DNA of 64,000 nucleotides from Convolutriloba macropyga. Its lineage: Eukaryota. Numbering within the stretch: the first letter of the stretch is position 1; every line of letters starts with the position of its first letter. The notes beneath the pieces are model-generated. The model searched no databases and was not told the DNA's origin. It saw only the letters and a list, made by a program, of their open reading frames with translations. The stretch spans positions 65,782,001-65,846,000 of the forward strand of contig NC_134474.1 in assembly GCF_964194025.1 (NCBI RefSeq), written 5' to 3'. Below, one piece after another: positions 2,405 through 61,262 of this stretch. A program made the position numbers and the translations under genes.

Positions 2405-2429
2405 AGTAGTAATATAGTGAGCTACACTC

Positions 2430-2460
<31 letters not shown>

Positions 2461-2466
2461 TCCCCC

Positions 2467-2815
2467 ATGTATTAAGATAGGGTATAGCGTATTTTTCGGG
2501 ATTTGGGACCTCCCTAACGTATTAAGATAGGGAATGAATTAGCATGTATTAAGATTAGGTATAGCGGCGTTAATGTATTAAGATAGGGTATAGCCGCCAT
2601 GTATTAAGATTAGTTATAGCCGGCGACATGTATTAAGATTATGCGCCGACATGTATTAAGATAAGTAATAGCCGCCGACATGTAATGAGATTAGTAATAG
2701 CCGCCGACATGTATTAAGATTAGTAATAGCCGCCGACATGTATTGAGATTAGTAATAGCCGCCGACATGTATTAAGATTAGTAATAGCCGCTGCCATGTA
2801 TTAAGAGTAGTATAG
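2467..2815 (+). repeat. Sub-terminal tandem array in the TIR, 12 copies of core GTATTAAGAT; regular 29-bp unit ATGTATTAAGATTAGTAATAGCCGCCGAC (mirrored at ~21157-21505)
   Basis: Core motif at 2469, 2519, 2546, 2575, 2601, 2630, 2653, 2682, 2711, 2740, 2769, 2798; the last six are spaced 29 bp. Confidence 0.93.
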
Positions 2816-3178
2816 TCGGTGCAAATGTGGGGGGTAGGTTCGGAGACGCTCCTGATAGGCTGAAATTTTGAGGGGAAAAAATCAATGTTTGTGTAGTTAT
2901 TAAGTGTTTACTTGAGAACAATAGAATCGGCGTGGGTAATTAATTGCTGTAATTATGTGAGGGGTAATTATGTGACAGGTTGAATTTTGTTTACAACTTT
3001 TATGTTATTAAATTGTGAAATTAATTGGTGGGGGTTTTCAATTACCCTAGTTATCTGAGGGGTAATTATGTGACATGTTGAATTTTTGTTTACAAATTTT
3101 AGGTCAATTGCAAAGATTGTTCCCCTAATTGTTTGAATCAATTGTGTAACAAATGTCTTTTGCGCGCTCATTAATTGG

Positions 3179-3183
3179 AAAAA
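3179..3183 (-). terminator. Putative Pol III terminator (T5) for the tRNA-iMet
   Basis: Minus strand reads ...GCTA TCTTGAC TTTTT; T5 lies 7 nt after the discriminator base and forms the innermost bases of the left TIR. Confidence 0.7.
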
Positions 3184-3190
3184 GTCAAGA

Positions 3191-3262
3191 TAGCAAGAGG
3201 TAGTTTTGATCTACCGTCCTCTGGGTTATGGGCCCAGCGCGCTCCCACTGCGCCATCTTGCT
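3191..3262 (-). tRNA. Initiator tRNA-Met (CAT) gene inside the Polinton
   Basis: Minus strand: AGCAAGA TG GCGC AGTGGGA GCGC G CTGGG CCCATAA CCCAG AGGAC GGTAG ATCAAAA CTACC TCTTGCT A (72 nt). All four stems are Watson-Crick paired. Initiator hallmarks present: A1:U72, three G:C pairs at the bottom of the anticodon stem, C33, A54 and A60, discriminator A73. Confidence 0.95.
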
Positions 3263-3566
3263 AATTACATGCATATATGCATTATTTTTTGTACATTATT
3301 TGAAAAAAGATGTTAAATAAAAGAAAAAAATGAATTAAAATAGTATAAAATGACAGACACAGTACAAATTATGAGCATCAAAATGCAAAATTACTCAATC
3401 ATTTACAATAAATTGTATAAAATTCAATGAACATCAAGGTACACTTAGCCGAGTGGTTAATAAAGTTCGATAAAAAAAGTTTAGAAAACTCACGAGAAAC
3501 AGTTACGAGAAACATATACTATCGACTTTATTAACTTCAGCTTACTAATTACCAAAATGAACACTA

Positions 3567-3965
3567 CTACATATAGTTACTTATAAAATTTAACACGTGT
3601 ACATCATGAATATTGTTCAAGTTGGTTTGGAAAAACTTAAATAGTTGAAATGCTGCAAAAATTGCGTAGAATCCACACAAATTTTGCATCTTCTGAAGTG
3701 GTCGATGTATAATTTTTTGGTACTTTTTACCTAAAAATTTGTAATGTGTTACTGATCGAGCCAGAGAATCCGCATAATAGTAACTTCTGTTGAGTCGAGC
3801 AATCAATATCCAATGTTCACCGACTTCTTTACTCGAAGCAGTGTTAATGATTGCAAAGCTGAATTTGGGTAAATTTGGAATGAAATCTGCTGGAAACGAT
3901 CCAACGTATTTGAATTTTAGCTCAGGAATGCGTTCAATAATTTGTTGAAGAGATTGATTATCCAT
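3567..3965 (-). CDS. Adenain-like (C5 family) cysteine maturation protease
   Basis: 132 aa with His (GEHWILI), Asp (YYADSL) and Gln/Cys (LQKMQNLCGFY) in the order of the Polinton/adenovirus protease. Confidence 0.92.
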   Translation of the reverse strand: MDNQSLQQIIERIPELKFKYVGSFPADFIPNLPKFSFAIINTASSKEVGEHWILIARLNRSYYYADSLARSVTHYKFLGKKYQKIIHRPLQKMQNLCGFYAIFAAFQLFKFFQTNLNNIHDVHVLNFISNYM

Positions 3966-4242
3966 GACAAATAATCTTCTGTTTCAATTCGCAAGCTCCG
4001 TTTGAACAGGGATTTCTCACATTACAATCAAGTTGAAATGATTCGTTCTTTTCAATAAAGCAACAATCTTTAGATTGGGGAATTTTACGTATCAGACCTC
4101 CTGTAGATTCACTTACTCTGTCTTCACTATTGCCTGTGACATCGGGATGAAAGATAATAATGATGATTAAAAGTCCCAGGAATACTGCACAAATAAGGTA
4201 TACATATAAGTTTGGAGTAGGTCTACCCCAATTTTCATCCAT
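3958..4242 (-). CDS. Small single-pass membrane protein with Cys-rich C-terminus, function unknown
   Basis: 94 aa; hydrophobic LYVYLICAVFLGLLIIIIIF; six Cys in the last ~36 aa; overlaps the protease start by 8 nt. Confidence 0.65.
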   Translation of the reverse strand: MDENWGRPTPNLYVYLICAVFLGLLIIIIIFHPDVTGNSEDRVSESTGGLIRKIPQSKDCCFIEKNESFQLDCNVRNPCSNGACELKQKIICHG

Positions 4243-4375
4243 TCCCTATCTTGATATTATAGTGTGGAAAGGGTTGCAACTGGGCGATGAAAGTACATAT
4301 CCAACAAATGTTCCAACGCAGAAGGCAATAATATAAAAACCATAAAAAATTGAGAAGAAAATTAAAAAATCTTGA

Positions 4376-5719
4376 TTAATGCAGAGTTCTTAAGACATTC
4401 TTAGCAACTGTTCCAAACTGATCAATTTTAACTGTTGAGATTCGTTCTCCGAGAACAATTAACTCGGTAACATTGGTTAGCGGACGTTCAAAGAACATTT
4501 CTAAACGAAGACTTTCCCCACTGAGTTCAGGATGATGAACATTTTCACCAGCGTCTTGGAGTGATGTGAGATCGAATACAAGCACATAATGATCTGTGAA
4601 GAAATCATTCGGTAACGCAGGAATTTCTTCGTTGAAGTTCATTGCCTTCATTGTTGTAACATAAGCTCTACAATTGTTGGTTGTATCAATTGAGACAACA
4701 GCTCTCCCCCCTCGAACAATTCTCAGCTCCCGCAGTCCAAACTTTCGATAATGAAAAGGATTTTCTTGAAAATGTCCGGTGAATGCTGAATTAGTGTTCA
4801 TTGCTATTGCAATTCGTCTGATTGGGGCATTATTGAAAACATTTTCCTGAATAAATTGATTTTGTCCAGAAGGAATAATAAATGTTCGCGCAATTGTCTC
4901 CATAAAATTATAGCAAGCTGGTTGATGTGTTAGTTGATACTTGATTGTCTGGTGATAGACCTCATTAACGACAACACGTCTCGTAAAAAGTGAACAGTCA
5001 AGAACTCTAAGGGAAACATGTGGATTGTAGGAAATCATGTAAAAATTTGGTCTCGCTCGAATCAATTTGAGTCTAATTTTTGTATTTGGAAGTAATAATT
5101 TTTAACATTGAAATAAGTCGATTGCAAGTTTACCATATAAGGTGACCCCATCTTTCAACAAAAGCTCTTCTTCCCTATCTATGAACGGACTTTTTTCATA
5201 ATCACTAGGATCTTTCTCAAATTCGTATCCATGACAAGCCAAAATTCCTTCATTATTCATTGTAGAAGCATTGAATTCATTGGATATCAGAGCTTTGTGG
5301 CCATAGAGTCCGTTAGAGTTGTACACTTGTTGATTGTTTAAATACACTTCGCAGTTGGAGAAAAGAGAGTGTAACAAGTTGTTGACATGAGTCAAATATT
5401 GTAAATCATCATCAGTGAAAGTCATACCCATATCTGGTTTTCCATGCTCCTCTTTTTTCATGAAATCGTCAAATAATCTTCCCTTTTGTAATCCAACTTT
5501 AATTTGTAAATGAATATCTCTCATATCGAGATAAATACTTCTATCTGTTTCAAATTCAAATTCAATGCTGCTTTCATCCAATGAAGTGCTGGGATAAACT
5601 TCTTGAATATGGGATGATTCAACTGGTTCCAAAACCGGAATTTTGTCAAAAATCTCCAAGCAAGAATTTGTAAAGTGTCCATAACGGAAATTACTGTCAT
5701 TTGTTGATCTGGTATTCAT
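4376..5719 (-). pseudogene. Major capsid protein (double jelly-roll), one gene interrupted by an in-frame TAA at 5102-5104
   Basis: ORFs 5102-5719 and 4376-5065 are in the same frame (...FQC*KLLLPNTKIRLKLIRARPNFY...), 448 codons in total. Motifs VNNLLHSLFSNCEVYLNN, PIRRIAIAM, ENPFHY and VFDLT match Polinton MCPs. Confidence 0.9.
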
Positions 5720-6072
5720 TTTAGTTTGGTAAAAATATCCCTCCTAGTTCGACGACGTCGACTGATTTTTGGCGAGCGTTTTCGAATAATACGTCGTTTT
5801 CTAGGTTTTCCTCCTCCTAGTTGTTTACGTAAAGTTTTCTTTCCAACATCTGTGGCTGCAGATTTGAACTTTTTCCTTCCAGCTAATACATTTCCGATTT
5901 CTGGCGCAGCTAATTCAATCAAGTCAGCACCAACTCTTTTAGCTGCTGGTACAACATATCGTCTCAAAAAAGGAATTGCAGTTCTCCCAATTGTTTGTGC
6001 TAAAGCTCCAAATCCTCTTCCCCTTTGTCTTGAATAACCACGAAAATACGGTAAATCACTGTCTGCAACCAT
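5716..6072 (-). CDS. Basic virion core / membrane-lytic protein (adintovirus pX/cupiennin-like)
   Basis: QRGRG-FGALAQTIGRTAIPFLRRYVV amphipathic segment, an LGGG adenain-type cleavage motif and an Arg/Lys-rich tail; lies between penton and MCP. Confidence 0.75.
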   Translation of the reverse strand: MVADSDLPYFRGYSRQRGRGFGALAQTIGRTAIPFLRRYVVPAAKRVGADLIELAAPEIGNVLAGRKKFKSAATDVGKKTLRKQLGGGKPRKRRIIRKRSPKISRRRRTRRDIFTKLK

Positions 6073-6089
6073 TTTTTGTAAACTTAATT

Positions 6090-6902
6090 TTAAAAATGAT
6101 TGTCTGAAGCTCTTCTGAACATCAATACAGCTCTTGTTACACCTACTGAATTGAAGGGAACTTTTTCACCGTATGAGTCGCGGAGCTCAAGTTTAATGCT
6201 GTGGAAAGAATTTTTAAGAATTTTTTTAAATTGTAGATTTGGGAAGTTTTGATAATTCATATATTGTCCAGTAGATATTATGTCTCCATTCTTAATTTTA
6301 GAAATAAACGGAATACATCTCAAAAGCGCCGCTTTTGTATCACCTACAATATTGTATTCAACAATATCGCTGTATATCATGAGAGTATGAATTCGAACAA
6401 TATCATAGGGAAATTTAGGAAAATGTGGTCCAGCACCACTCATAAAAACACCCATTCCGTAAACAGCTTCCTCACACCCAAATACGTGACAGAGATCAGT
6501 ACTGAAGATAACTAGTAACGAGTTTTCATTAGGAAGGCTTAGGGATATTCGCTGTGTAATTCTGTTGACTTTTAATTTGATTGGGGTTTTCTCATACTTT
6601 TCTCTTTCCTGAATTTGTTTGTTCATTTCGTTCACAATATCAGATATTGATGGATATAGTCCTGCATCAATTGCATAATAATCGGAAGGTTTTGTATCTG
6701 GAGTTGCAGCATCTAGATAGAAAAATTTTCCATCTGTAATATTCTGGTACAAAGATGGATATGATAGTTCGGTTATTGCCACCTCCCATTCTCCTTCAAG
6801 GTTAATCTGTTCGGGAAGGAAATTGGTAAAAGAACTCAATGTATTATTTGGATAACAATCAAAGGATGCGTTGGAAACCAGCTCTACCGTAAAAGAGTTC
6901 AT
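6090..6902 (-). CDS. Minor capsid protein (penton, single jelly-roll)
   Basis: N-terminus FTVELVSNAS..YPNNTLSSFTNFLPEQINLEGEWEVAITELSYP and C-terminal IYSDIVEYNIVGDTKAALLR match Polinton mCP. Probable ATG at 6902, just after the integrase stop. Confidence 0.88.
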   Translation of the reverse strand: MNSFTVELVSNASFDCYPNNTLSSFTNFLPEQINLEGEWEVAITELSYPSLYQNITDGKFFYLDAATPDTKPSDYYAIDAGLYPSISDIVNEMNKQIQEREKYEKTPIKLKVNRITQRISLSLPNENSLLVIFSTDLCHVFGCEEAVYGMGVFMSGAGPHFPKFPYDIVRIHTLMIYSDIVEYNIVGDTKAALLRCIPFISKIKNGDIISTGQYMNYQNFPNLQFKKILKNSFHSIKLELRDSYGEKVPFNSVGVTRAVLMFRRASDNHF

Positions 6903-6904
6903 CA

Positions 6905-7847
6905 CTAAATGATACACTTTGAGAGCTCTTGTTCATAAAATTTTCCTAGTATTTCATCACCCTGCTCTCCCTTGAGGTTGTATGTTGGAGGTTTGTACGT
7001 AGCAATCTTAACAATTTCAAAGATTTCACTCGTGAACTGTGACTTGTATCCTTTTCTAAAAGGAATATCGTATTTCGAAATTCGTACTTTATCCCCTACT
7101 TTAAACCGAGGTTTTTTGTATTGTCTGATCGGATTTTTGTAAAAAATTGATAAAAAGTCTTTGTTTTTTTACCTCTTTTGGAGCTTTACCTGTAGATCTA
7201 TTTACTCTACTATTCATTGTATTTAGGAAAGATCCCATTTTTACAAGGTACTTATGCCCGTTTTCTTCCATGAAGCGATAAATAATGTTTTTCAAAGATC
7301 TGATAGCTCTCTCAGCTACGGCAGCTTTTGTTTCACTTCTCGTTGAATAAATTTTAATTTTCTTTTCTCCACAAAATTTCCGAAATTCGCCACCAAACTC
7401 TGTTCCTTGATCAACCCATACTTTTTGTGGGATGTTGTTTTTTCGTAGCATTTTTTTGAAAGCTGCTACAGCATCTGTAGAATGCTTTGATTTCATTGGT
7501 TGAACACGGACAGAACGAGAAAATACATCAACGCAGATTAATAGATACTTTACTCCGTTATTAAACTCTGACAATTTGTCCATAAAAGCTAAATCAAGAC
7601 ACCAAATTTCATTTATCCGCTTTGCAAATGCAGGTAATCGTCTAAAATGTCGATTTGCTTGACGGTATTTTGTATAGGAATTTTTAGTGTGGAGAAAGGA
7701 AATAACCTTGCCTCTTGATAAACCGCTCGCTTTTTGAAGATTTCTAACCGATCCAAATGCAGCTTTTCCTTCTTTGTATAATCGTTGAAGTTTCGCTTTT
7801 TCAGATTTTGAAAGGGATCCAACTCCCTCTGTCTTTGCTTTTGGCAT
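6905..7847 (-). pseudogene. Retroviral-like (rve) DDE integrase with a +1 frameshift in the A7 run at 7164-7170
   Basis: D (CLDLAFMD), D (WVDQGTEF), E (VAERAIRSLK). Removing one A restores the C-terminal domain KPRFKVGDKVRISK...FRKGYKSQFTSEIFEI...GKFYEQELSKCII* ending at 6905. No chromodomain seen. Confidence 0.92.
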
Positions 7848-8208
7848 CCTTGTTTACAATTTTGCTCGGACTTATCCCTGTAGCATCAAGTATTGTGTAA
7901 TATATATCAGGAAACGCAATATTTTTTCTCTTCAATGCGTAAATAAAATCGGTAAACGCTACATTTGTATCTCTTCCATCCAGTAAAATGGAGTCACTGA
8001 GGGACAGCTTGATTCGAGGACATTTGAGTATTTGATCTACAACTTACTCGTTTTTGAATGATTTTGTGTTAGTGGTGATGTCCTTGTGAAGAGAATCTAA
8101 ATTTTGTGGAACGAAGTTAACTTTTTCCTCACTCTCGTCCAATTTATACACATGTAATTTGAATTTTTGTTCTTAAAGCTGTTGAGGAATCAAAACAAAC
8201 TGTTCCGT
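7801..8208 (-). pseudogene. Decayed Polinton gene between the ATPase block and integrase (136 codons), absent from the ORF track
   Basis: Frame reads (ACG)EQFVLIPQQL*EQKFKLH...FKNE*VVDQILKCPRIKLSLSDSILLDGRDT...DRGSWIPFKI*. Start codon appears mutated to ACG; in-frame TAA at 8173-8175 and 8044-8046. Exactly fills the gap between its neighbours. Confidence 0.72.
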
Positions 8209-8209
8209 T

Positions 8210-8515
8210 TCAAGAAAGACGGTTAATGATAGACGGAGTTAGAATTGATATAAGTTCTATTCCTTTCCTTGAACTTAAAATTGCTCTCCTTTTATTTATT
8301 CCAGTTCTTTTTAGAATAAGCTGATGAATTTCGTCTTGATACTTTTTTACGTCTCGTTTTTGAATATCTTGCAGTTCTCCTCTGAGCATGTTTACGATGC
8401 ACTCGTTTAGGAACTGAATAAATTCTTTCGGACAATTTTTTAGGTAAGTTCTTTTGAAGTTCCGGGAATAACTTTGGAACGTTGTCAGAGTAGAGAGATG
8501 TTGTGTGCTCATCAC
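8210..8515 (-). CDS. Conserved small basic Polinton protein overlapping the ATPase 3' end
   Basis: FIQFLNECIVNMLRG...KRRAIL pattern resembles the small ORF that typically follows the Polinton ATPase; overlaps it by 224 nt in another frame. Confidence 0.7.
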   Translation of the reverse strand: MMSTQHLSTLTTFQSYSRNFKRTYLKNCPKEFIQFLNECIVNMLRGELQDIQKRDVKKYQDEIHQLILKRTGINKRRAILSSRKGIELISILTPSIINRLS

Positions 8516-9167
8516 TCAAAAATGTGGTCTGCTGTTTATGTTGTGGAAGGAAAAAAATTGAAGGAATCGATCCACTATTTGTACAAAATCGAAGAGAGTC
8601 GACTGTTTTGGGAGTTAAATCAATAAGTAAATGACCATAAGGAATAGAAGTTGCTTTGGTATACCAATCTTTTAATTGTGAACCTAATCCCAACTGTTGG
8701 CTCAGAGTGTTTATTTGCAGTACATCTCTAGGAGATTTGAACAAGACGATATGAGTATTTTGTAACTCTATATCTCTTCCTAATCTACTCTGATGAAATA
8801 AATTGTGTTTGATGTATATTGTGCTGAGTCCTTTATGTCTTCCAGCTGTTGCAATTTTAACGAAATCTTTAGAGCTGGAAATCTCCTCACAAGAGTCGTC
8901 AAAAATTAACAGATACTTTGTTCCGTTATTTGGGAGGTTTTGACTAAACTCAAAGTCAACTCCTTCTATGAACTCAATATTTTTAACATCTTTAGACATT
9001 AAACCATAAAGAGATTGATAATGTTGATAGAAGTAGTAAATTTTGTCGAACTCTGGTTGAAAAGTTCCAATTGTTAACCATTCATGTATAAGATGAGATT
9101 TCCCAGATCCGCTTGGACCAACCAATGAAATAAAAATTCGTTCTTTTGTGGAAATTATCTTGTTCAT
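8292..9167 (-). CDS. FtsK/HerA (A32-like) genome-packaging ATPase
   Basis: Walker A GPSGSGKS, Walker B LLIFDD, arginine-finger region TAGRH, and HIVLFKSPRD. Confidence 0.95.
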   Translation of the reverse strand: MNKIISTKERIFISLVGPSGSGKSHLIHEWLTIGTFQPEFDKIYYFYQHYQSLYGLMSKDVKNIEFIEGVDFEFSQNLPNNGTKYLLIFDDSCEEISSSKDFVKIATAGRHKGLSTIYIKHNLFHQSRLGRDIELQNTHIVLFKSPRDVLQINTLSQQLGLGSQLKDWYTKATSIPYGHLLIDLTPKTVDSLRFCTNSGSIPSIFFLPQHKQQTTFLSDEHTTSLYSDNVPKLFPELQKNLPKKLSERIYSVPKRVHRKHAQRRTARYSKTRRKKVSRRNSSAYSKKNWNK

Positions 9168-9427
9168 AAATTAGGTGAAGGTAAAATATAACCAACTGTA
9201 CTAGAAAGGATTGCAATCCAAACTGTTGTTTCTTCACACGTTGTAGCCAATGTTATTCGTACTATACAACAGACCAGAATTACGAGTATAACAAAAAATT
9301 GGGACAGAAAAACGACTAGAGACCTATTACAAGTCTGTCCAAAACATTTCCATGATTGTCGTTCCTGATTATTATCATCAAAGACAAAATTACCCAAATT
9401 TAATCCTTTATCTGTATGCTCAGTCAT
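9164..9427 (-). CDS. Small two-TM membrane protein
   Basis: 87 aa; two hydrophobic helices joined by TCEET; ATGA overlap with the ATPase start. Confidence 0.75.
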   Translation of the reverse strand: MTEHTDKGLNLGNFVFDDNNQERQSWKCFGQTCNRSLVVFLSQFFVILVILVCCIVRITLATTCEETTVWIAILSSTVGYILPSPNL

Positions 9428-9712
9428 TTAAACGTAATCATTGAGACGATAGAGAAAATGTTTCAACTGAATTGTGATGTAAATATATAAAAAAATGAGA
9501 TAAGCTTCTAAACATAAAAAAGAAACAAACAACAGCGACAGCCAAAACACTGTCTCTTCACAGGAATTAATAACAGAAAGCATAAAAAAGGAGAATAAAT
9601 TCAAAATTAAGAAAAACGACAGAATTGAAATGAAGAATAACTGTGTAACGCTAGGACAAAATTTGTTCAACTTTCTCATTTTTGAAGCAACTTTTCTATG
9701 TTTTGTAGGCAA
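9428..9712 (-). CDS. Small two-TM membrane protein, probable paralog of 9164-9427 (first ATG at 9679)
   Basis: TQLFFISILSFFLIL...SCEETVFWLSLL parallels SQFFVILVILV...TCEETTVWIAIL; its stop directly abuts the next ATG. Confidence 0.6.
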   Translation of the reverse strand: MPTKHRKVASKMRKLNKFCPSVTQLFFISILSFFLILNLFSFFMLSVINSCEETVFWLSLLFVSFLCLEAYLIFLYIYITIQLKHFLYRLNDYV

Positions 9713-9787
9713 AAAAATGATTTTAAAAATTAATTAAAAGACAATATGATACATTACAATCAAAGTATATAAAAATTTTTACAAATA

Positions 9788-10255
9788 TTAAATTTTGTCA
9801 AAAAAATTAAGAACCCAAGTTCCATAAGCATAAGCTTTCTTCTCTGCACAGTGCAATGTTTTCTTGTGTCGGTAGGGGTAGTTACTACATTCCCAGATTG
9901 TATCTTCGTTGGAAATCAACTTAGAGGCTTTTGGACATCCAAAATCGTCCAAATTTTCCACATCCTTTCACAAATAATTGGATAGGATTTTACATTTCTC
10001 CAATCCTTTGGCAAAGTATTCGGTTGTAGGAGAACAATGTTTGATGAATTATGGTTGGAAGATCTGAGTAATCAACTTTTCCATTATTCCAGTTTATTCC
10101 ATGTAAATTCTTTGTGTCCACTTTGCTTGAAATGTTGGCTTGTAGTCATTCGGTGGGAGGAATGTATATCCTAACACAATTCCGTCCTTGAAAATTCCCA
10201 GCTCCTTGACAACTGTTCCCTCCAAGCACTCAATATCAAACACAACGAGAGTCAT
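9788..10255 (-). pseudogene. DEDD/DnaQ-exonuclease-like accessory gene with a 1-nt deletion (~10115) and an in-frame TGA (9968-9970)
   Basis: Reconstructed: MTLVVFDIECLEGTVVKELGIF...KW/TKNLHGINWNNGKVDYSDL...FAKGLEKCKIL...ENLDDFGCP...LHCAEKKAY. N-terminal hhhDxE motif plus HGI motif. The fold assignment is inference. Confidence 0.65.
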
Positions 10256-10286
10256 CCTCTTTTTAGCTGAGATAATTGACAAATGA

Positions 10287-10691
10287 TTAACAATCTAGTA
10301 TTTTAAAAATATGAGGATGACAAACTTTGATGTAGAGACAAAAGAATAATCCAGTTATATGACCTAGAAGACAGGAGCTGGGTAATTGCGGCAGCATGTA
10401 ACAATAACCTGGTCCTTCGTCTGTTGTTGTTTTCACAGCTCCAGCAGAATCATGTAAAATTGCATGTAGACGAAAAATTTTTGATCTAGCTAAGAAAAAG
10501 TCCAAAAGAGAGTTTCCATATCCAATTCTTCCTCCGTGAGGAAACTTTTGATCAATTTCGTCCAAATCGACATTTCGGTCCCAAATTTTACACGCTGCGA
10601 GAAAACAGTTTTTACGTTTTTCGTTCGTAGGGAACATTGAAAGTATGCTTCCGTAACAATTGAAAATGTTTACCAGAGTAACAATATTCAT
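10287..10691 (-). CDS. Accessory protein, possibly phospholipase A2-like (HD motif)
   Basis: GGRIGYGNS followed by HAILHDSAG resembles the GxGN loop and HD dyad of viral PLA2s. Likely ATG at 10691 overlaps the upstream stop (TAATG). Confidence 0.5.
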   Translation of the reverse strand: MNIVTLVNIFNCYGSILSMFPTNEKRKNCFLAACKIWDRNVDLDEIDQKFPHGGRIGYGNSLLDFFLARSKIFRLHAILHDSAGAVKTTTDEGPGYCYMLPQLPSSCLLGHITGLFFCLYIKVCHPHIFKILDC

Positions 10692-11098
10692 TAACTCTGA
10701 GTTGTTTCGTCCAAAATAATGCAAGTCTTTTTGTAATTTTCTATATAGGAAAGAAGTGTTGGTAGATGATCTACTAGATTTTTATACTCCTCTTTTTTCA
10801 AATCAATCTTTGTAAGAAAACTCCACTGATATCCGTTCCAGCGATGTTGAGAAATGGAAATTTCTTGTTTGTCGGAACGATATGTTAGAGTTGTTCTGCG
10901 CAGCCCATTATGAATAACCCACTTGAATTCAGAAATTTGGGACTCTACGTCTAAATTATCCAAATTGGGAAAATTTTGCGCTTCAAGAACTGTATATGAA
11001 TACCTTTTAAGCTCGTGATGTAACCTGACGTGAAAAACTTTTGATTTATCTCTGAGACTTAAGAAAATGTTTCTAGAGCATCCAATATCCCAACTCAT
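10691..11098 (-). CDS. Accessory protein, possibly PC4/whirly-like
   Basis: 135 aa; C-terminal beta-strands followed by IDLKKEEYKNLVDHL resemble the PC4 helix motif. Confidence 0.55.
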   Translation of the reverse strand: MSWDIGCSRNIFLSLRDKSKVFHVRLHHELKRYSYTVLEAQNFPNLDNLDVESQISEFKWVIHNGLRRTTLTYRSDKQEISISQHRWNGYQWSFLTKIDLKKEEYKNLVDHLPTLLSYIENYKKTCIILDETTQS

Positions 11099-11211
11099 TC
11101 TAAGAAGAAAAAAGTTTCAAATGAAAAAATGTTTACTGAAAGTCAAATACATATAATCACCAAATATTCATCATTCAATATAAAAAACATCATAATATTG
11201 CGCAGCAGTAG

Positions 11212-11811
11212 TTATTGAAATGTACATTGTTCAATATTAGAGAAGTCTTTAAGATTTTCAATGAGTTCCTTGAATTCTTCCATTTTATAGCTGACGTAAG
11301 TCACTTGCTTGAACTCATTGCTCTCTTTGCGACAAAATAGTCGGATCTGGACATAAACTGAAGCTGGATTGTCCTGAACGTACTGTATAAAGGTAACGTA
11401 GAGTCTTCGATTTTTTCCAATGCTGATCTCTCTTGCTTTGTGACATTGTTGCAGCACGTCTTCCATTTTTGGGTTCTTCTCAAATTGAGCTGGATTTTCT
11501 CGAATTTCCCAGTCTCCATTCAGCAGATCGTTCTTCAGAAGACAAAATTTCTTGAATTCGTAATCTCCAATTCTCAGTTGTTGGTACTTTTCAAATGTTC
11601 CACGTCTATCTTTTTTAAAGACTTGAAAAGTTGGTTCCGAGTAATTTTGTCCATTTCTAAATATTTGGGACACAGTAAATCTCCCAAATCTGTTTGGATG
11701 AGAACCAAAGTCAATATAAAATGGGACGGAATCAGTACCCAATTTAGGTTGTGAATCTGTAAACATTGATGGAGCGCTCGAGTAACAAGGAGATACTTTG
11801 GAGAGAGACAT
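11212..11811 (-). CDS. Accessory protein with two PC4-like (ssDNA-binding/coactivator) repeats
   Basis: SIGKNRRLYVT...VYVQIRLF...VSYKMEEFKELIENL aligns by eye with the PC4 core; a similar unit occupies the N-terminal half. Confidence 0.6.
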   Translation of the reverse strand: MSLSKVSPCYSSAPSMFTDSQPKLGTDSVPFYIDFGSHPNRFGRFTVSQIFRNGQNYSEPTFQVFKKDRRGTFEKYQQLRIGDYEFKKFCLLKNDLLNGDWEIRENPAQFEKNPKMEDVLQQCHKAREISIGKNRRLYVTFIQYVQDNPASVYVQIRLFCRKESNEFKQVTYVSYKMEEFKELIENLKDFSNIEQCTFQ

Positions 11812-11928
11812 TTACGTAACTTGAGTAAGCTGCGAGAAGTTGATTAAATGATTTGCTTAAAAAATTAAGGGCCTCTACAACGCAGAATTTCCTTTTATGC
11901 TAACGACATCATTGTTTTCGCACAATTT

Positions 11929-12310
11929 CCTAAAAAGGAAGAGAAAAATGTGTCTATTTAGAATTCTTCCTTAAAAGGATTTCTAATCAGAAATTTTCAA
12001 TAAAGAAAACTTTTGAATCATTATAGAAAAAGAGTCTTTGTGTTTAGCACGTCTGTGTTGCATTAGAGAGAAGTAGTGACGAAAATATTTTGAACAAGTA
12101 AAACATCGAAATTTATTAATCCGCTGTTTCTGGAATTGATTCATAGTTCAAATGAGATTTTATATTGCACATAACAATTTCATTAGTTTCCTTATTTGGA
12201 ATTTGAATTCCTTTATAATTTATAAGTTGATTTCCTTATTTGGAATTTGGTTTTATTTATAATAAATAAATTAGTTTCCTTATTTGGAATTTAAGTTCAA
12301 ATAAGGAAAT
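11929..12310. promoter_or_regulatory. Cluster of CArG boxes (CC[A/T]6GG) in a divergent promoter region
   Basis: CCTAAAAAGG at 11929, CCTTAAAAGG at 11969, CCTTATTTGG at 12190, 12234 and 12278 (44-bp spacing), plus an inverted partial copy at ~12298-12310. Confidence 0.6.
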
Positions 12311-12341
12311 CAATTTCTTTAGAACTAAATAATATTACAGA

Positions 12342-12938
12342 ATGGCAGCAGTTATGTGTCAGGTTTTACCACACTTTTACAAAAAATTCTGTGAAAAGGC
12401 GTTGTTTATATCTGTATCTGTCAAAGATTATAGACCATATATTCTTACAAGTGAATATGTTGTTGCTTCACACAACAGTTTCTGTCCCCTGAAAACCTGT
12501 CGATATCACATTGTTCTCATTTCTTTCTCCATCGGAGACTTGCTTCAAAAACTGGAAGATCTCTCCTATTTATATCAGACAGTTGATTGTTTATATACAT
12601 TATATAAACATCAATTTTTTGGCAATATTTTGGAAGAATCGGGACTTGTCTTTACTCAGTTAGACAGAGCAGTACAACACAATTATGAGAACAAATATGT
12701 TGAGAAGTTACCTAGTGTGTCTAAAAAAAGATTGAGTAGAAAGAAGTTCAAGAGACATCTACTGCGCGCTGAACAAAGAAATGTAAGCACACAAACAATG
12801 GGATCTTCTTTTCTGGACAGAATTCAATCTCTTAAAAACTCAAAATATGAGGGTGAATTGATAAAAATTGTTGACTGTTTGTTAGACGGCCATGGCTTAA
12901 TTGATAATTCTCTGTTATATCTTGAAATTAGAAAGTAA
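12342..12938 (+). CDS. Accessory protein of unknown function
   Basis: 198-aa ATG-initiated ORF followed by AATAAA; basic patch KKRLSRKKFKRH and motif RNVSTQT. Confidence 0.7.
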   Translation: MAAVMCQVLPHFYKKFCEKALFISVSVKDYRPYILTSEYVVASHNSFCPLKTCRYHIVLISFSIGDLLQKLEDLSYLYQTVDCLYTLYKHQFFGNILEESGLVFTQLDRAVQHNYENKYVEKLPSVSKKRLSRKKFKRHLLRAEQRNVSTQTMGSSFLDRIQSLKNSKYEGELIKIVDCLLDGHGLIDNSLLYLEIRK

Positions 12939-13067
12939 TAAATTTGTAATTGCATCACAATTATTTACATAGTATCAGTTTTATGTTTGGTTTAAAAATC
13001 AAGAAAATTCAATTTCTCTTTTTTTACAATCTTTTTCTTAAATGTTTAAATTGATACCTCTAATCTG

Positions 13068-13516
13068 TTAAATGTCAAGTTTTGTAACAAATTATTCTTT
13101 TAAAAGTCGAGTTTTCTTACAAAAATTTTTGTTAACTGTTGGGTTTTGGAACAATTTATTTTAATAAAAGTCGAGTTTTCTCAACGAAATTTTTGTTAAA
13201 TGTCGAGTTTTCATTCAATCTTTTTGTTTAAATATCAAAAAACAGTTTCCAATTGGATACAATAAAGCGCAAATTTTTTCCTGATTTTCACCAGTTTACG
13301 GTATAATTTAACGCAAAAAAGGAAGAGATTTTTAATTTGTAAAATGACAAGTTTTCTTTTTCTATAACAACTTAAAAATCGAGTTTTCATACAGGTTTTT
13401 TTCTTAGAAATCAAATTTCTGCTCAGTTTTTTTTCTTAAATATCAAATTTTTGATCAAAAACTTTTGTTAAATGTCGAGTTTTGATAATGCTATTTCCGT
13501 TAAATATCAAGTTTTG
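13068..13516 (+). repeat. Degenerate 32-bp-period array (core TTAAATGTCGAGTTTT), two blocks of six
   Basis: Cores at 13068, 13100, 13132, 13164, 13196, 13228 and at 13340, 13372, 13404, 13436, 13468, 13500. Confidence 0.85.
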
Positions 13517-13709
13517 TAACGAAGTTTCAAAATTCAAAATTTTGTTTGATTATATCCTTGTGAACTGGTTTAGAAAAGAAAGCTCACATGAGAAAAATTA
13601 TATTATAAAGAATGTTTAAATACATCACCAGGAAAATGTATAAATCAACATACAACTTTTCCGTTAAGAACGATTACAAATGAAGCCGCAAAATTGTACC
13701 AACTCGAAT

Positions 13710-14432
13710 CTATTCAAACAGAGTTCTCACAACATACTCTGGTAAGTTTTGAATCTCATTCCCAAAAGGTCTAGAACGTTCAAATATTACTGGAGGATCA
13801 GTTGGTTGAACGCTGATTGAAGTTGTTGAATTTTCATCAGTCAGCAAAATTGGATTGTGCGCCGTTCCATCCTCTATGGAAGGTGTTGTCATTGATGGAG
13901 TAGTCGACATATCAGTAGAACCATAGTACTGTGCCGGATCAAAGTTCTGCTGTTCATTTGCTGTCCAAGTGCTAATATCAACACTTAGCTCGCTCCCATC
14001 AAAGCTTGACACAGTTTGAAGCAAATTCCCTGACTCCTCCACTGAACTCAAAACTTGATTTACATCCGGGCTAGAGAACCAAGAGTTGGGAATTTGCCCT
14101 TCTTCCCAAGGGAAAGTATATTGAATGTTGCCAGCGACGTAGGTAGGTGGAAATTCTGTCCCAGCAACGTGGGGATAGTGGTGCCCACTAATAACAGCAA
14201 CCTCGTGTCCCATCGCTTGAGTTCCAAGCTGATTCTCCGTAATTGGAACCTGACCCTGATGATAGGTGTCGAACTGTTGTCGCTGGTGTTCAATAATATG
14301 CCACACAGTGATGGGTAAAGTCATTACAGTCTCATATAATCCGTTTGATAAGTCTTTAATACTTATCCGAGCAGTCTCCTCAGTGAAGGAAAATGAGTAC
14401 AGAAGACTGTTGTTTTGCAGAGTAAACTCCAT
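13710..14432 (-). CDS. Acidic Ser/Thr/Pro-rich accessory protein (probable ATG at 14432)
   Basis: Long ORF in an AT-rich context; acidic, likely disordered C-terminal two-thirds containing NPILLTDE. Confidence 0.7.
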   Translation of the reverse strand: MEFTLQNNSLLYSFSFTEETARISIKDLSNGLYETVMTLPITVWHIIEHQRQQFDTYHQGQVPITENQLGTQAMGHEVAVISGHHYPHVAGTEFPPTYVAGNIQYTFPWEEGQIPNSWFSSPDVNQVLSSVEESGNLLQTVSSFDGSELSVDISTWTANEQQNFDPAQYYGSTDMSTTPSMTTPSIEDGTAHNPILLTDENSTTSISVQPTDPPVIFERSRPFGNEIQNLPEYVVRTLFE

Positions 14433-14968
14433 TTTGTTCAGATGAGTTGATAGAAGTGGATTTTTTAGAAACAAAAGCAGTTTGTAAATGAACGTATTGA
14501 AAACTGTCAAGTAGAGAGTAAGTTAGAAAACAACAAATTTCACTTTATAGTAGGACAAAAAGAATATCTAAGTTAGAAACAGATAAACGTTACAACTGAA
14601 GTAAGATCTGTAGATAAGAAGAATGTGAATGTAGGAACTCAATTGTATAAAGTTTTGAAGAATAGTTAGCAGGACGATGAGGAACAGAGGTGAAATTAAT
14701 TTTGAAGAAATGAAAGAGAATGATGAAATCTAACTTTGTCGCTCCTATTTATAGTGAATTCCGTCCAATAAGAACAAAGTAACCAAAGAAGGAAATATTT
14801 TGTAGAAAAACTGACGTTAGTAACCGAAACAGGAAATTGAAATCATTTAATGTATCCGAATATGGAAGAAGTTGTTATAAAATGATGCTCGTATACGAAG
14901 CAGGAACATCAATGCGTGAATAGAAACCAAATATGGTTTTTGAATAATACATGTATCACATGATACGA

Positions 14969-15586
14969 CTACTTGTTTACTAAATAAGGATAGCTCATTG
15001 GGAACGAAGTGACATAATTTACCAAAAATGTTAAGCTCTGATAAATTTGTTCAACTTCGTTAAATTTTAAATCAATCTCGGAAAGTATTCCATTTTTGGA
15101 ACAGAACTTTTGCATATATATATTTGGGAGCCGAATTCCAAATCGAATTTTTACTCCTTCAGAATTGTAATCTGTATAATAATGAAAAAACAACGCGCTT
15201 TGTACAGATGAAGTGATTGCTATGGGGTCAGGAATTGGAATACAGTTCGCTTGTGCTAGATTTCTGTACTGTTCTAAAATTTCGGGAACAGAATTCAAAA
15301 TAAATAAAATTTCGTACTTGTTAATGTGTAGCTCTGACGATAAATCAAATGATTGTTTCGTTATATAATCATCATATTTGAATTTTTTAATGGAAAATGT
15401 TGCATATTCGAATCCTTTACTAAATCGGATTATTCTGTCATTTTGAACGCAAATGTCCAAGAAATTGTAGAAAAAATAGGAATCAACATCAATCTCGTCA
15501 ACTTTGTAAGCATCGGCAATTCCTTCTTTCCTCTTATATATTTTTTCCAACAACTGTAAATGATTTTTGATTAACATTTTTCGCAA
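14969..15586 (-). CDS. Accessory protein, possibly two divergent PC4-like repeats
   Basis: Two units of beta-strands plus helix: FSIKKF...LHINKYEILFILNSV and IYMQKF...IDLKFNEVEQIYQSL. Confidence 0.55.
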   Translation of the reverse strand: MRKMLIKNHLQLLEKIYKRKEGIADAYKVDEIDVDSYFFYNFLDICVQNDRIIRFSKGFEYATFSIKKFKYDDYITKQSFDLSSELHINKYEILFILNSVPEILEQYRNLAQANCIPIPDPIAITSSVQSALFFHYYTDYNSEGVKIRFGIRLPNIYMQKFCSKNGILSEIDLKFNEVEQIYQSLTFLVNYVTSFPMSYPYLVNK

Positions 15587-15813
15587 ATGAGCAAAATTTC
15601 ACGCAATACTCTGTTTATGTAAAAGAAAATTAAAATTAAGAAACAATTACACAAAATAAAATCGTTAATCTTCAGAAAAATTTCTTTAACACGCGATTTC
15701 GATTGTTTGAGAGGTTCCAAGACAATAACGTTAAGTTGTAAAGTAAATATTTGTTCGTGAAGTATGGATGAATATTTGTTTTCGACATCTTTAACATTGT
15801 TGTAAAAGCACAT
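15571..15813 (-). CDS. Small hypothetical protein
   Basis: 80-aa ATG ORF tightly overlapping the next gene; hydrophobic C-terminus; no recognisable motif. Confidence 0.35.
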   Translation of the reverse strand: MCFYNNVKDVENKYSSILHEQIFTLQLNVIVLEPLKQSKSRVKEIFLKINDFILCNCFLILIFFYINRVLREILLICEKC

Positions 15814-16194
15814 TCATGTGCTAATTTCAATTTTCAATAGGACTAGATTTGTTTGCAAGCACCGAATTCTGTCAATTGCGGATAGACACAAATTTGAATC
15901 ACAGAGTTTGTTAAGATTGGAACAATTTGTTTGAATTTGTTGTGAGTCTGTTTTTGGATTATGGCTGGATGAAATATGAAAACTTATATAAAATGTAAAA
16001 GAAATGATTAAGAAGATATATAAGAATGATTTGCTATTTTTGAGTTTACTCCAAGGAATGAATTCACATATTTAAAAAGAGTGTTCTTAATTATTAAAGG
16101 TATTTGTAAATGGAAGAATCTGATTGGTTTATTCATTATGTTCTAGAATGTTCGGTTATGACAACAAGCTTCTTAAAATGGAAATGATAAATTT

Positions 16195-16216
16195 CCATAT
16201 ATGGAGTGATGCGTCA
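16195..16216 (+). promoter_or_regulatory. CArG box plus CRE/AP-1-like site upstream of pPolB
   Basis: CCATATATGG-AGTGA-TGCGTCA, ending ~110 bp before the pPolB ATG at 16328. Confidence 0.5.
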
Positions 16217-16327
16217 TAGCTGCGTTCCCTAAATGTACAAAAATAATTTCTTTCATTCTCACTTTGTTATTGTCACAATTAGTTGCTCGTCACAATACCC
16301 GAATTTGTTTCATCTTGTACCAAAACA

Positions 16328-19300
16328 ATGCCTTCTCTCGATAGAAGTCTCCCAGTGAAATGCACAAAGTGCAACAAAATGGTGGTGAAGAAGAATATGG
16401 CAAGACACAAGCAGTCTTGTGATAGTGGGACTCTATTTTGTCCCAAATGTCCACATTTCAGTACAAAGAAGAAAGAAGACATGAATTACCACATTGGTAA
16501 GCATCACGCTCCTAAGGATACAAAGCTAAGCACTATGTGTACTGTATGCTTGGAGGAGTTTCCGAGTTTCTATTCTCTTCAACAACACAAGAGGAGAAAG
16601 CATGGAACTTCAACAAAAGTTGGAACAAAATCGAGTGAAAAGCTTAAAGAAGTTCTAGAATCAGAGGAGCTGGAAAAGGACAACGAGCAGCTACAACAAG
16701 AACTTAGTGCTTGCCAGCACTTTTTTGACGACACTGAGATGGAAAATGGAAGACATCAAGTGTTCAACTTCAAGCTGTCCAAGCTCGATCCTCATGAAAT
16801 TAATAAAAAGTTGAAAGAAGTATTCGAAAAACTCAACTGTGCAGCCAAAGTCAACTTAGCTCTAGGATTTATATAAAGAAATGTGGATACGGACGAGTAT
16901 CGATACTTCTACGCTCACGAGAACAACACTTTCTTCGAGAAATCTCATCTACTCTGTTCCAAAGGAGACTTAGTCTCTCTTCAGGACAGGATTGAAAAGA
17001 TGGATTTAGTGGAGACGTGTGCTCAGGAGCGGGAGAATACAAAATGGCGATTTGCTCTGACTACAAATGTAACAATATTTTGCGCTCTCCTAAAATCCAT
17101 TCCAATGGGATGTATCGATGCTGTTCTTCCTGAACAGTTACTCAGACGACCAGATGTGAATTGTCTCGTATCGAATGGCTATGGTGAGACTTACAAAGAT
17201 TATCTTTGCTTATTCCGAGCTATAGCTGTTCACTTATATGGATCATCGGAGCTTGAGATCAATGCAAAAAATTTGTTTAGTGTATTCCTCCACGAATCTG
17301 GACAAGACGCAATCAATTTCAGAGGGGTATCGATCGATCATCTTGTATTTGTTGAAAATGCGATAAAGCACAACATATTTATTTACGATATTGACATTGT
17401 AGATGGAGATTTTGTTGGTGAACTTGCGAGGAGAAGTATTGAAATGTATGAGAAAAATATTAATTTATTACGTTACAACAACCACATATGCTATGTAGAT
17501 GATATCAACACATTCTTTAAACGATTCCGTTGTCCCAGTTGCGATACGTTCATTCAGAAAGCGGGAAATTTCAACCGCCATGTTAAAACGTGTAAAGATA
17601 GAGTACAGCATATTTACCCAAAGAGTGTGTATACATTGCGCGAGACCTTATTTGATAAGCTTGACGGCTTTGGAATTTCCTACAACGAAGATCAAAAATT
17701 GTTCAAGAACTTGGCTATTTTTGACTTTGAATCGATATGTGTACCCTCCGACCAATTAAAAGATACAAACACAACCACTTGGATTGGAAAGCATGAACCA
17801 ATCTCTGTCTCTATTTCCTCCAATTTAATTGATGAACCTGTCTTCCTATGCGATAAAGATCCGAAAGCTCTCATTATATCTTTTGTTGAAGCTATTGAAG
17901 ACTTAGCAAACAAAAGTAAAACTGAAATGTGGACAAAGTTTTCCTCTATTGAAGCAGTAATCAGAGCACGAGTTAACGCAATTGGTGAAAATTTAATTAA
18001 AAGAAAAGATCAAAACGCTTCAACATTTGAGTGTGAAGATGAACGTACCGAAGATGATGAAGCTGATATGTCTACGCAATTTCTCCAAATGCAGAAAAAC
18101 CAGCTTTTGGACTTACAGCAGCACTTTGAGCGTTATGTGAACACTTTACCTGTGTTCGGATTCAATAGTGGAAAATATGATTTAAATCTCATTAAGTCCT
18201 ATCTCCTACCCTATCTTATTCATGAGCGCGACATTCAACCTACTGTTATTAAAAAAGCAAATCACTTTGTTTCTCTTAAGTTTGGTGATGTAAAATTTCT
18301 CGATATCCTCAACTTTCTCGGTGGAGCTACATCACTTGATTCTTTCCTTAAAGCATACAAGACAAATGAGACCAAAGGATTCTTCCCCTATGAGTGGTTT
18401 GACTCTCCCGAAAAGCTCGATGCAACTTTTCTCCCTCCTTACGACCGTTTCTTTAGCAAACTGAGAAACTATAATCCACTGGAGAAGGAATTTACTGATT
18501 TCACTAAATTGCTTAACAGTGGATTTTCTCAACAAGAGTCATTAAAAAAGTTGAGGTTGAAAAATGTTCCTCCATCTGGAATTGACAATTACAATTACCT
18601 GAAAGTGGTCTGGGAGCAAGAAAAAATGGCTACATTCAGAGATTTTGTCAAGTGGTACAACAACAAGGATGTTGTTCCAACACTGGAGGCAATGCAAAAA
18701 ATGATGGAGTTTTATCACAACAAGGGCATCGATATGTTAAAACTCGGATGTACACTTCCGAACTTGGCTAATATCTGTCTTCACAAGTCAACAAACCACA
18801 AGTTTTTTCCATTTGTTGAAGCTGACAAAGATTTACATGACAAAATACGTGAGGATATGACTGGTGGTCCATCTATTGTTTTTACTAGAAAAGCAGTAGT
18901 TGATCAGACCTTCATACGAAACTCTGAAAACCTTTGCAAGTCTATCGTAGGTATTGACGCTAGCCAACTCTATCCTTTTTCAATGTGTCAAGAAATGCCC
19001 ACTGGACTTTACACTCGATGGGAATTTGATACAGATTCTCAAAAATTCAGGGCTCGAACAAACAGATGTCGAACATTTGATAACATGGTTATGTCATATC
19101 TTCAATCACAACGTTCCGAATGTAAAATTGAGAGCTACTACACAACCGGAAAACAGAAGAAGATTGATTGTTTTAGCGTAGACGGATTTTGCACACATTG
19201 TAATACGGTGTTTGAAGCCATGGGTTGTTACTTTCATTTCTGTCCTTGTCAGGAAGCTAAAGCAAGTCTCTCGGAAGAGGAAACACAGAGAGGGATTAGA

Positions 19301-59981: not shown

Positions 59982-61214
59982 TATTGCGGCTGAGCTTAAC
60001 AACTCAGAAATCAAATTGAATAGCGCTTCAAGGTCGTTTCAAGCCTTAAAGCTAGAATAGCGTGACAAGCGAAATTTAATGCTACATTCTATCGAAGCCA
60101 AACGGATTTGTTCATTTTGTTCAACATTTATATTTAGCAACTATTATTAGTACGTAATCGTCATATATGAAGTGAAACAGAAACTCAAACTTTAATTACG
60201 CAATTATTGCCACGTATTCAAGTGTTCACAATCGCACAAATTTAGCTCAAAAGGAGCAAGAGATACCCAACTTGGTAAGCCAGATTCGATGAATTTTGCG
60301 ATTTTCATACTAATTCAGAGAGTGCGGGGCACCGTATAAGGTATCCCGAACCCCAACTTCAGTGCATTCAGAGAATATTACGACATAGTAATCTACAACC
60401 AATCAGAGATGCAATTTTGACATGTACGGCAGTATAAATAGAGCTTGAAAAACTAGCAAAAATCAGTTGAAACTTGTGAAATTTGTCTTATTAAACTGAC
60501 ATACAGTGCGTATTGAAGCACACTTTCTTGAGCGGTAAATTACTTGTTATCGTGTCTTGTTTCTGTAGATCATATTAGTGATTGTACAGTTTTAACTTTA
60601 CTTTGACTTGTGAAAAGAGAATTAACTTTGATATTCTCAAAACTTTCTTTCTGAGGAACGAAGTTCCTAAGTAAGAGAAACTTTGTGCAAAGCATAAAGT
60701 CAGTTTCTCTTACTGGCTTTAACGAAGCTGATTCTAGTTCAACATTGGTGTTATTGAAACCAATAGAGAGACTTGCTAACATTAAAGTTAGAAAATATTA
60801 TTATTGTCAGATTTCCAATTGTTAAGACCTACTGTTTTACAACTGCTTACTGCAGCAGGTTGAAACTTTGCATAGTTATAGCCAAGCTATAGGGCTACAA
60901 TTTGTAGGAACGGGAATTCCTAAATTGGGTTTATAACTTGAGTCATTAACAAAAACTCAACAATAATTTATTGTTTCAATTTGAATTATTTTGTTATTTT
61001 GAGAGAAACAAGATTGTTAAACAGCAAAGCTGAGCGATTAGTTATCAGGAGTAATTGAGCAACAAGTAATGCAACGGTAATCTACAGTATAGCGGATAAT
61101 ACAGTTCACAAAAGTTAACTGCAAAAATACAATATCCGGACAGATTTGAAACCGCTGAAACGAACTGGGCGGTGTAAAGTTTTCCTTGACTTTGATAGGA
61201 GAGCAGCCGTTACA
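59982..61214 (+). repeat. 5' LTR (~1.2 kb) of a BEL/Pao retrotransposon
   Basis: Starts TATTGCGGCTG exactly where the duplicated segment breaks and ends CAGCCGTTACA (imperfect terminal IR). Internal CCAAT (~60399) and TATAAATA (~60434). Followed by a PBS. The second LTR is outside the window. Confidence 0.65.
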
Positions 61215-61216
61215 TT

Positions 61217-61232: not shown

Positions 61233-61262
61233 ACAGTGGAAGGCAAACTGCTGTCCAATCTG

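Follow-up and report, generated by a model that had tools for sequence, protein, structure and literature searches.

The stretch of DNA analysed here (the window) comprises 64,000 nucleotides of the Convolutriloba macropyga genome (NCBI RefSeq assembly GCF_964194025.1, contig NC_134474.1, positions 65,782,001 to 65,846,000 of the forward strand), and it carries a 19,159-bp Polinton/Maverick element at 2405–21563 which holds, at the inner edge of its left terminal inverted repeat (TIR), a complete gene for an initiator-type tRNA-Met. The TIRs start AGTAGTAAT and end ATTACTACT, and the element is bordered by identical 6-bp direct repeats, the target-site duplication CACACC (2399–2404 on the left, 21564–21569 on the right). 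The left TIR spans 779 nt (2405–3183), with a G23 run at 2433–2455 and an array of a 29-nt subterminal repeat at 2543–2812, while the right TIR spans 775 nt (20789–21563), with a C19 run at 21517–21535 and the same array at 21160–21429 (9.6 copies in each), and has no tRNA. The two arms are 100% complementary over a perfect inverted repeat of 747 nt (2437–3183 against 20789–21535), and the length of the homopolymer, which lies 28 nt from the termini, is the sole difference between the TIRs. As the initial annotation had proposed, this is a classical Polinton/Maverick: we found a protein-primed family B polymerase (PolB), an rve integrase, a double jelly-roll capsid protein and a packaging ATPase together with long TIRs and the 6-bp duplication.

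The tRNA gene, which we call type A to set it apart from a second variant in related elements (type B), lies on the minus strand at 3191–3262 with its discriminator base at 3191. ARAGORN calls a tRNA-Met(CAT) at 3189–3263(-) as the sole tRNA in the 64-kb window, and the Rfam tRNA model RF00005 matches 3191–3262(-) with 60.3 bits (gathering score 29, E 1.5e-10) and flags no non-standard pair. The tRNA is 72 nt long, its anticodon is CAU (CAT in the DNA) and 21 of its 21 cloverleaf pairs are standard. A minimum-free-energy fold of the single sequence with ViennaRNA did not give the cloverleaf, and for this reason the structure rests on the covariance-model alignment and the pair counts. When aligned with three variants from related elements and one tRNA from giant viruses (see below), the A1:U72 pair at the acceptor end (columns 1 and 71) is found in all five sequences, the loop end of the anticodon stem consists of three consecutive G:C pairs (columns 28–30 with 38–40) with a single G:U only in the degraded relative L009, and the T loop reads A-U-C-R-A-A-A in every variant, so that A54 and A60 are kept. 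The window tRNA also has C33, G20 and A57, as read from the sequence, and the A-box and B-box positions presumably hold the bases that are invariant in type 2 promoters of RNA polymerase III (Pol III). The prediction of an initiator tRNA-Met therefore stands, with both programs in agreement and with A1:U72, the G:C triplet, C33, A54 and A60 all present. Downstream, a 7-nt trailer (3190–3184) separates the discriminator from a TTTTT run (3183–3179, minus strand) that forms the innermost bases of the perfect left TIR. The earlier suggestion that the TIR supplies a terminator holds for the position of this run, which falls exactly at the inner end of the TIR; its role as a likely Pol III terminator is drawn from established Pol III biology.

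A Pol III-type gene close to the genome end of an adenovirus-like element raises the question of whether its product is a non-canonical RNA, i.e. a decoy or regulator. The adenovirus virus-associated (VA) RNAs and the tRNA-miRNA-encoded RNAs (TMERs) at the left end of murid herpesvirus 68 are genes with Pol III type 2 promoters near a genome end, and their products are not canonical chargeable tRNAs. The bases G20 and A57, both derived in type A, would agree with such a role. However, the Polinton tRNA differs from the VA RNAs and TMERs in its full, perfect cloverleaf, its CAU anticodon and its retention of every initiator identity feature that we checked bar A20. The T5 run lies only 7 nt past the tRNA and leaves no room for attached hairpins, and no other Rfam family matches anywhere in the window. 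We therefore regard a decoy or regulatory RNA as very unlikely.

A blastn comparison of the left and right arms reveals that the tRNA gene is part of an insert. The perfect TIR stops at 3183/20789, and a second match of 77 columns at 84% identity pairs left 3294–3369 with right 20730–20803; outside its T-rich overlap with the main TIR this match covers about 3321–3369 and 20730–20778, and it is what is left, inward of the tRNA block, of an older TIR that was longer. The gap between the two matches measures 137 nt on the left and about 10 nt on the right, and the span 3179–3320 singled out in the initial annotation is indeed a block of the left arm that is missing from the right. The insert itself is 110 nt long (3184–3293, minus strand), made up of a 31-nt 5' flank, the tRNA and the 7-nt trailer, and it is missing from the right arm and from the related loci L010, L011 and L012. 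It is bracketed by a 15-nt direct repeat that resembles a target duplication (3169–3183 on the outer side, 3294–3308 on the inner side, 13 of 15 positions identical), and the single-copy, unduplicated state of this repeat is seen in both L004 and the right arm. The tRNA was thus inserted as DNA, in a piece of 110 nt with a 15-nt duplication on its two sides, and not by retroposition, since an A-rich tail is missing in either orientation. Moreover, because the T5 run is part of the duplicated target, the insertion borrowed a pre-existing T-run. Considering that the perfect TIR ends exactly where the heterology begins, and that the older inner part has drifted to 84% identity, we take the insertion to be old when set against the recent history of this Polinton family. 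The perfect part of the TIR has presumably been homogenised, and in this locus a heterologous insert determines how far inward the TIR is kept perfectly homogenised.

Three simpler accounts of the block were rejected. A tRNA-derived short interspersed nuclear element (SINE) does not fit, as the insert stops 7 nt past the tRNA, has no body and no A-rich or simple-repeat tail, and has no solitary copies. The tRNA is not an integration target either, since it is complete, lies 787 nt inside the left terminus, and the CACACC duplication is unrelated to it. An assembly artefact is countered by the identical tRNA block on three separate contigs. All seven tRNA instances that we found stand in the context of a Polinton left end, and the approximately 65 kb of DNA outside the elements that the window and loci provide, a small sample, held no solitary tRNA.

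An ATPase search returned 2,509 relatives, and the clusters at 90% identity or higher hold 168 ATPase and 306 polymerase members. Our sample covers 12 related loci out of several hundred copies, and ten further loci beside the window were sorted by the identity of their ATPase-to-capsid block, which gave four subfamilies. The first (SF1, 99.5% identical within) consists of the window copy and L003, both with type A; the second (SF2, 94.8%) of L004 and L009, both with type B; the third (SF3, at least 98% within, with L010 at 95%) of L005, L011, L012 and L010, with type A only in L005; and the fourth (SF4, 88.5% within and about 68% to the rest) of L006 and L008 (another assembly), with no tRNA. 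L007 is more distant than SF4 and has no tRNA. Among the nine left ends sampled from SF1 to SF3, the three closest subfamilies, six carry the gene. L003, on another contig, is an independent insertion, being 98.8% identical to the window copy with a different flank, and L005 is about 78–81% identical to the window. In these three copies type A sits in the same place and reads outward, with an identical tRNA sequence. Type B (L004, L009 and L011) reads inward about 45 nt from the type A site, beside the 29-nt repeat array, which it directly abuts in L004 and L009, with a conserved inner-TIR motif about 28 nt further inward; in L011 it belongs to a second, truncated left end (4710–4781). The resemblance between the two types is limited to the tRNA and a few bases of trailer. 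The tRNA is thus not a peculiarity of the window copy but recurs in independent copies and in diverged subfamilies. As to the view that it is cargo of the element, this recurrence speaks for it, although the gene is not universal, since the right arm, close siblings and distant relatives are without it.

The type B loci show further rearrangement of their own. In L004 the tRNA is present twice via a local duplication of 2.1 kb: segments 14689–16759 and 18275–20463 are direct copies at 99% identity with the tRNA included, and reverse-transcriptase open reading frames (ORFs) of the RVT_1 family lie between them; the structure could stem from a retroelement that inserted with a duplication, or else from a tandem rearrangement. 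The 29-nt repeat has expanded over several kb in L009 (15984–20873) and in L011 (424–4035), in the latter in both orientations. Among the copies without a tRNA, L010 is likewise rearranged and holds an integrase segment in triplicate (11308–15616).

Comparison of the subfamilies shows that the left-end module is exchanged between them. L005 is a recombinant: on an SF3 backbone it has a patch, corresponding to about 2900–3400 of the window, that is 93–100% identical to SF1 where the remainder is about 80% identical, and its segment 15786–16342 is missing from its siblings L011 and L012, which are 98% identical to it. These alignments show that the SF3 copy L005 gained its type A module by way of a recombinant patch of about 500 nt, and left-end modules are thereby shown to move among Polinton subfamilies by recombination. 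The unique inner part of the TIR (window 2830–3183) behaves as a variable cassette. SF1 and L005 have about 350 nt here, including an internal repeat of about 100 nt; in SF2 it measures about 40 nt, and in SF3 its place is taken by about 135 nt of unrelated sequence (the L010, L011 and L012 junctions). At the left ends of L010 and L012 and at the main left end of L011, these approximately 135 unrelated nt contain no tRNA and no remnant of one by blastn-short, and the same search found neither a tRNA nor a decayed remnant in L006, L007 and L008.

These patterns bear directly on whether the gene is a neutral passenger, that is, a fragment of a host initiator tRNA that was patched into the left inner TIR edge by break repair or recombination and has been copied along since. 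Such an origin would account for the right arm and the close siblings that lack the tRNA without a remnant, and for a cassette that takes the form of 350 nt with a tRNA, about 40 nt with an inverted tRNA or 135 nt with none; the recombinant patch explains why type A is identical across subfamilies, and the window copy is itself defective. On the other hand, two sites and two orientations need either two acquisitions or retention through rearrangement, and the remnant of the old TIR has drifted to 84% between the arms with the tRNA still perfect. The comparison of type B lineages also speaks against it. Between L011 and L004 the tRNA is identical at 69 of 71 positions (97%), against 123 of 168 (73%) in the adjoining interior flank (Fisher p = 4e-6), and the same excess of tRNA over flank is found between L011 and L009. 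In none of the four element variants is there a stem-breaking change, as all differences are confined to loops (positions 16, 20, 33, 57, the variable loop and the discriminator) or turn a G:C into a G:U pair, and across the five aligned sequences, the giant-virus one included, 105 of 105 pair cells are standard, so that every stem is kept across the copies rather than decaying at random. We consider a neutral passenger a real possibility, though on the whole a somewhat unlikely one.

An altered anticodon (TAT in place of CAT) is found in a single copy, L009, whose element is heavily degraded, and this change fits a relaxation of constraint after the death of the element, as would be anticipated if the tRNA had been under selection. 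With the giant-virus tRNA as outgroup, the derived states are the variable-loop A and A57 in type A, and U25 and U33 in type B. As each type has two derived states of its own, neither descends from the other, and both a single old capture and two separate captures are possible. The combination of G20 and A57, which the initial annotation had remarked upon, is present in the window but is confined to type A, since the sister variants have A20 or U20 together with G57.

The two orientations also bear on what kind of role the gene could have. Type A points in the same direction as the protease and capsid genes, at a distance of 305 nt downstream of their block, and the initial annotation had offered RNase P/Z processing at the tRNA as one option, whereby the cut would make the 3' end of the structural-gene transcript. 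Against this, type B occupies almost the same position in another subfamily but is encoded on the other strand, siblings with the same genes have no tRNA, and an AATAAA motif (3527–3532, minus strand), a putative polyadenylation signal, is found 35 nt past the protease stop and before the tRNA is reached. This option is accordingly disfavoured, and we hold it to be extremely improbable. That the tRNA is kept in both orientations points instead to a role of the gene itself, be it through its product or as a protein-binding site, and not to the processing of a neighbouring transcript. A protein-binding role would be fulfilled by a chromatin element, in which a TFIIIC/Pol III site keeps the element end free of nucleosomes or blocks heterochromatin, with the RNA being secondary. 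Barrier activity of tRNA genes is established in yeast and mammals, and the position of the Polinton tRNA at a domain boundary (the TIR edge) as well as its retention in either orientation would fit a role at the level of DNA that is independent of orientation. However, a barrier needs the A and B boxes only, whereas in the Polinton tRNA both the acceptor and anticodon stems and the bases of initiator identity are conserved as well, and the tRNA is found at one element end only. A chromatin function is in our view unlikely.

We asked where else such a tRNA occurs by scanning contigs of IMG/VR and of JGI metagenomes for a 24-nt pattern comprising the T arm and acceptor stem. This matched two IMG/VR giant-virus contigs (L013 and L014) and nine JGI contigs (L015–L023), and all of the matches sit in tRNA clusters of the giant-virus type. 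These marine clusters read Leu-Gln-Lys-Met-Glu-Asn and variants thereof, with a eukaryote-type initiator included. The initiator of this giant-virus clade has the same acceptor stem, D stem, T arm and C33 as the Polinton tRNA and is identical to it at 66 of 72 bases, differing in the D loop and in one compensatory pair of the anticodon stem. A second IMG/VR scan, which used the initiator-type anticodon arm and was unbiased as to the stems, found this arm on 57 contigs, and 45 of 67 such tRNAs had the T loop of a eukaryotic initiator. Among them the acceptor and T stems vary widely, and the next-best match to the Polinton tRNA reached 60 of 72. Initiator tRNAs are therefore commonly borne by giant viruses. 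The acceptor and T stems of the Polinton tRNA, which the initial annotation had set apart from those of vertebrate and insect initiators, proved not to be specific to the element, because identical stems occur in the marine giant-virus clusters; judging by the sequences compared, they are probably a widespread cellular form of the initiator. We think a host initiator tRNA gene the probable source. In a variant of a more speculative reading (see below), the tRNA may circulate among viruses rather than being taken from the host, its nearest match being the giant-virus initiator tRNA. When four hallmark proteins were compared by tblastn with 66 virus and metagenome loci bearing initiator-type tRNAs, one weak ATPase match was the only one obtained, and an ATPase search of IMG/VR found no relative, so that these collections yielded no evidence of carriers of the Polinton type.

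Viral tRNA cargo as such is known from other elements of this size class. In PMC12220804, 558 tRNA matches are reported in about 8,300 genomes of Polinton-like viruses (PLVs) and virophages, and tRNA predictions are marked in Fig. 6 of PMC8502044 for linear dsDNA viruses of mid size. The likeness to our case is a tRNA within an integrated double jelly-roll element of 15–40 kb, lineage-specific and not universal. The PLV examples named in the text of PMC12220804 are however elongators (His, Leu, Arg) in protist elements, linked to codon compensation, whereas here we have an initiator, in what is probably an animal host, on a classical Polinton with protein-primed PolB and rve integrase, at the TIR boundary and in two alternative layouts. 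Giant viruses share with the Polinton a virus-borne initiator of eukaryote type and, in one clade, its acceptor stem, D stem and T arm, but carry it in clusters of 4–7 tRNAs in very large genomes, compared with a single tRNA in a 19-kb element. None of the literature found in our search describes an initiator tRNA carried by Polintons or Mavericks. The statement that tRNAs are not known as standard Polinton cargo must be qualified, given the PLV and virophage tRNAs already described in PMC12220804 and PMC8502044. The case stands out in three respects: the tRNA is an initiator, it sits at the edge of the TIR, and it occurs in two layouts, with exchange of modules.

Taken together, these observations lead us to favour, with modest confidence, the view that an acoel-associated Polinton family carries this initiator tRNA gene as cargo, that Pol III transcribes it and that selection has kept it. 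In such a scheme the A and B boxes inside the gene would recruit TFIIIC, TFIIIB and Pol III, transcription would end at the T5 run supplied by the TIR, and the precursor with its short trailer would be processed, CCA-tailed and charged with methionine. The A1:U72 pair, the three G:C pairs, A54 and A60 would then direct the tRNA to eIF2 and the ribosomal P site, whereby the element could raise or safeguard the supply of initiator tRNA in ternary complex while its own genes are translated. By analogy, the initiator tRNAs of giant viruses and the tRNAs of PLVs as described in PMC12220804 may serve as precedents.

Several points weigh against a selected cargo gene. Every tRNA-bearing copy comes from one ENA assembly (ERZ25071359), in which the window is contig ctg37525, and the absence of the gene from close siblings (L010, L012 and the left end of L011) and from L006–L008 shows that it is dispensable for the element. 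As type A identity derives from a patch whose non-tRNA flanks are also 93–99% identical, it does not by itself constitute evidence of selection, and gene conversion with host initiator tRNA genes could be the source of the conservation. An A at position 20 is a defining feature of eukaryotic initiator tRNAs, and type A has G20 in its place; among the type B variants L004 has A20, and L011 and L009 have U20. Downstream of type B the T-run is weak (T4 in L004) or there is none nearby. Finally, compensation of codon usage cannot explain an initiator, and what a 19-kb element would gain from it is speculative. Codon usage is the usual account of viral tRNA cargo, and it is inapplicable here because an initiator is needed exactly once per reading frame. 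More tentatively still, and with considerable doubt on our part, animal Polintons might repeatedly acquire, exchange and keep an initiator tRNA in order to raise the level of eIF2-GTP-Met-tRNAi and so outlast a stress-induced shut-off of initiation. If this were true the initiator tRNA would be the only non-protein cargo of these Polintons, and with hundreds of copies the family would be a major contributor to the host pool of initiator tRNA genes. A 19-kb animal element that keeps this one tRNA, in two layouts and with signs of constraint, would allow a test of whether small DNA viruses interfere with how much initiator tRNA is available, and G20 with A57 (type A) and U25 with U33 (type B) provide natural tags that can be read by tRNA sequencing.

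The remaining genes of the element support its classification and document the state of the window copy. Next to the tRNA, a putative adenain-like protease region occupies 3567–4242 on the minus strand as two overlapping ORFs; its match to the Pfam family Peptidase_C5 (PF00770), at 18.8 bits, is under the cut-off of 21.3 and extends over no more than the N-terminal third of the adenain profile. The two ORFs, of 94 and 132 amino acids, recur in L003 (14924–15599), and in the other subfamilies the 132-residue ORF alone was called. The major capsid protein gene (4391–5719, minus strand) had no match in Pfam and none in the PDB by sequence search, and for this reason it was identified through the predicted structure of a full-length relative, P0399 (pLDDT 82, pTM 0.83), with which the window pieces share 43–49% identity; Foldseek matched this model, with E values down to 8e-16, to the double jelly-roll capsids of an iridovirus, PBCV-1, Sputnik and mavirus. 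The rve integrase gene (6905–8208, minus strand; PF00665, 47 bits) and the counterpart of a conserved 155-residue ORF (9788–10255, minus strand), recognised by comparison with L003 and other relatives, flank an intact A32/FtsK-like packaging ATPase (8292–9167, minus strand; Pox_A32 PF04665, 23.0 bits against a cut-off of 22.8). On the plus strand 16283–20683 encodes the protein-primed PolB with an N-terminal C2H2 zinc-finger part. The window PolB ORF gave no Pfam match at E <= 0.01 and no PDB match by sequence search. Its N-terminal part is 99% identical to residues 1–197 of P0252, and a PolB relative at 87% identity is annotated in Convolutriloba macropyga. The PolB relatives are about 1,445–1,467 amino acids long, some with PF03175 and PF13912, and those at 49–66% identity carry PF03175.

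Damage to these genes was counted against L003 (98.8% identical) and full-length relatives. The capsid gene contains one premature stop and PolB one in-frame stop, while two frameshifting indels each affect the integrase gene, which is intact at 433 amino acids in L003, and the counterpart of the 155-residue ORF; the remaining ORFs of the window copy are intact. This bears out the earlier statement that capsid, integrase and PolB are broken. With four broken genes the element nevertheless has perfect TIRs and an intact target duplication, and it differs from its sibling L003 by 1.2%; either the defective copy moved in trans, or its arms were homogenised after insertion.

Outside the Polinton, Symsagittifera roscoffensis supplies the single close named relative (53% identity) of a flanking methyltransferase gene, which together with the PolB relative above points to a host that is probably an acoel worm. 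Two pairs of 98-nt inverted repeats at 84–85% identity (38252–38349 with 55611–55708, and 788–885 with 55794–55891) are probably copies of another dispersed repeat family. Two adjacent ORFs of 259 and 605 amino acids with no Pfam match occupy 61146–63739, the most G+C-rich part of the window (0.45), and the window includes 200 N positions.

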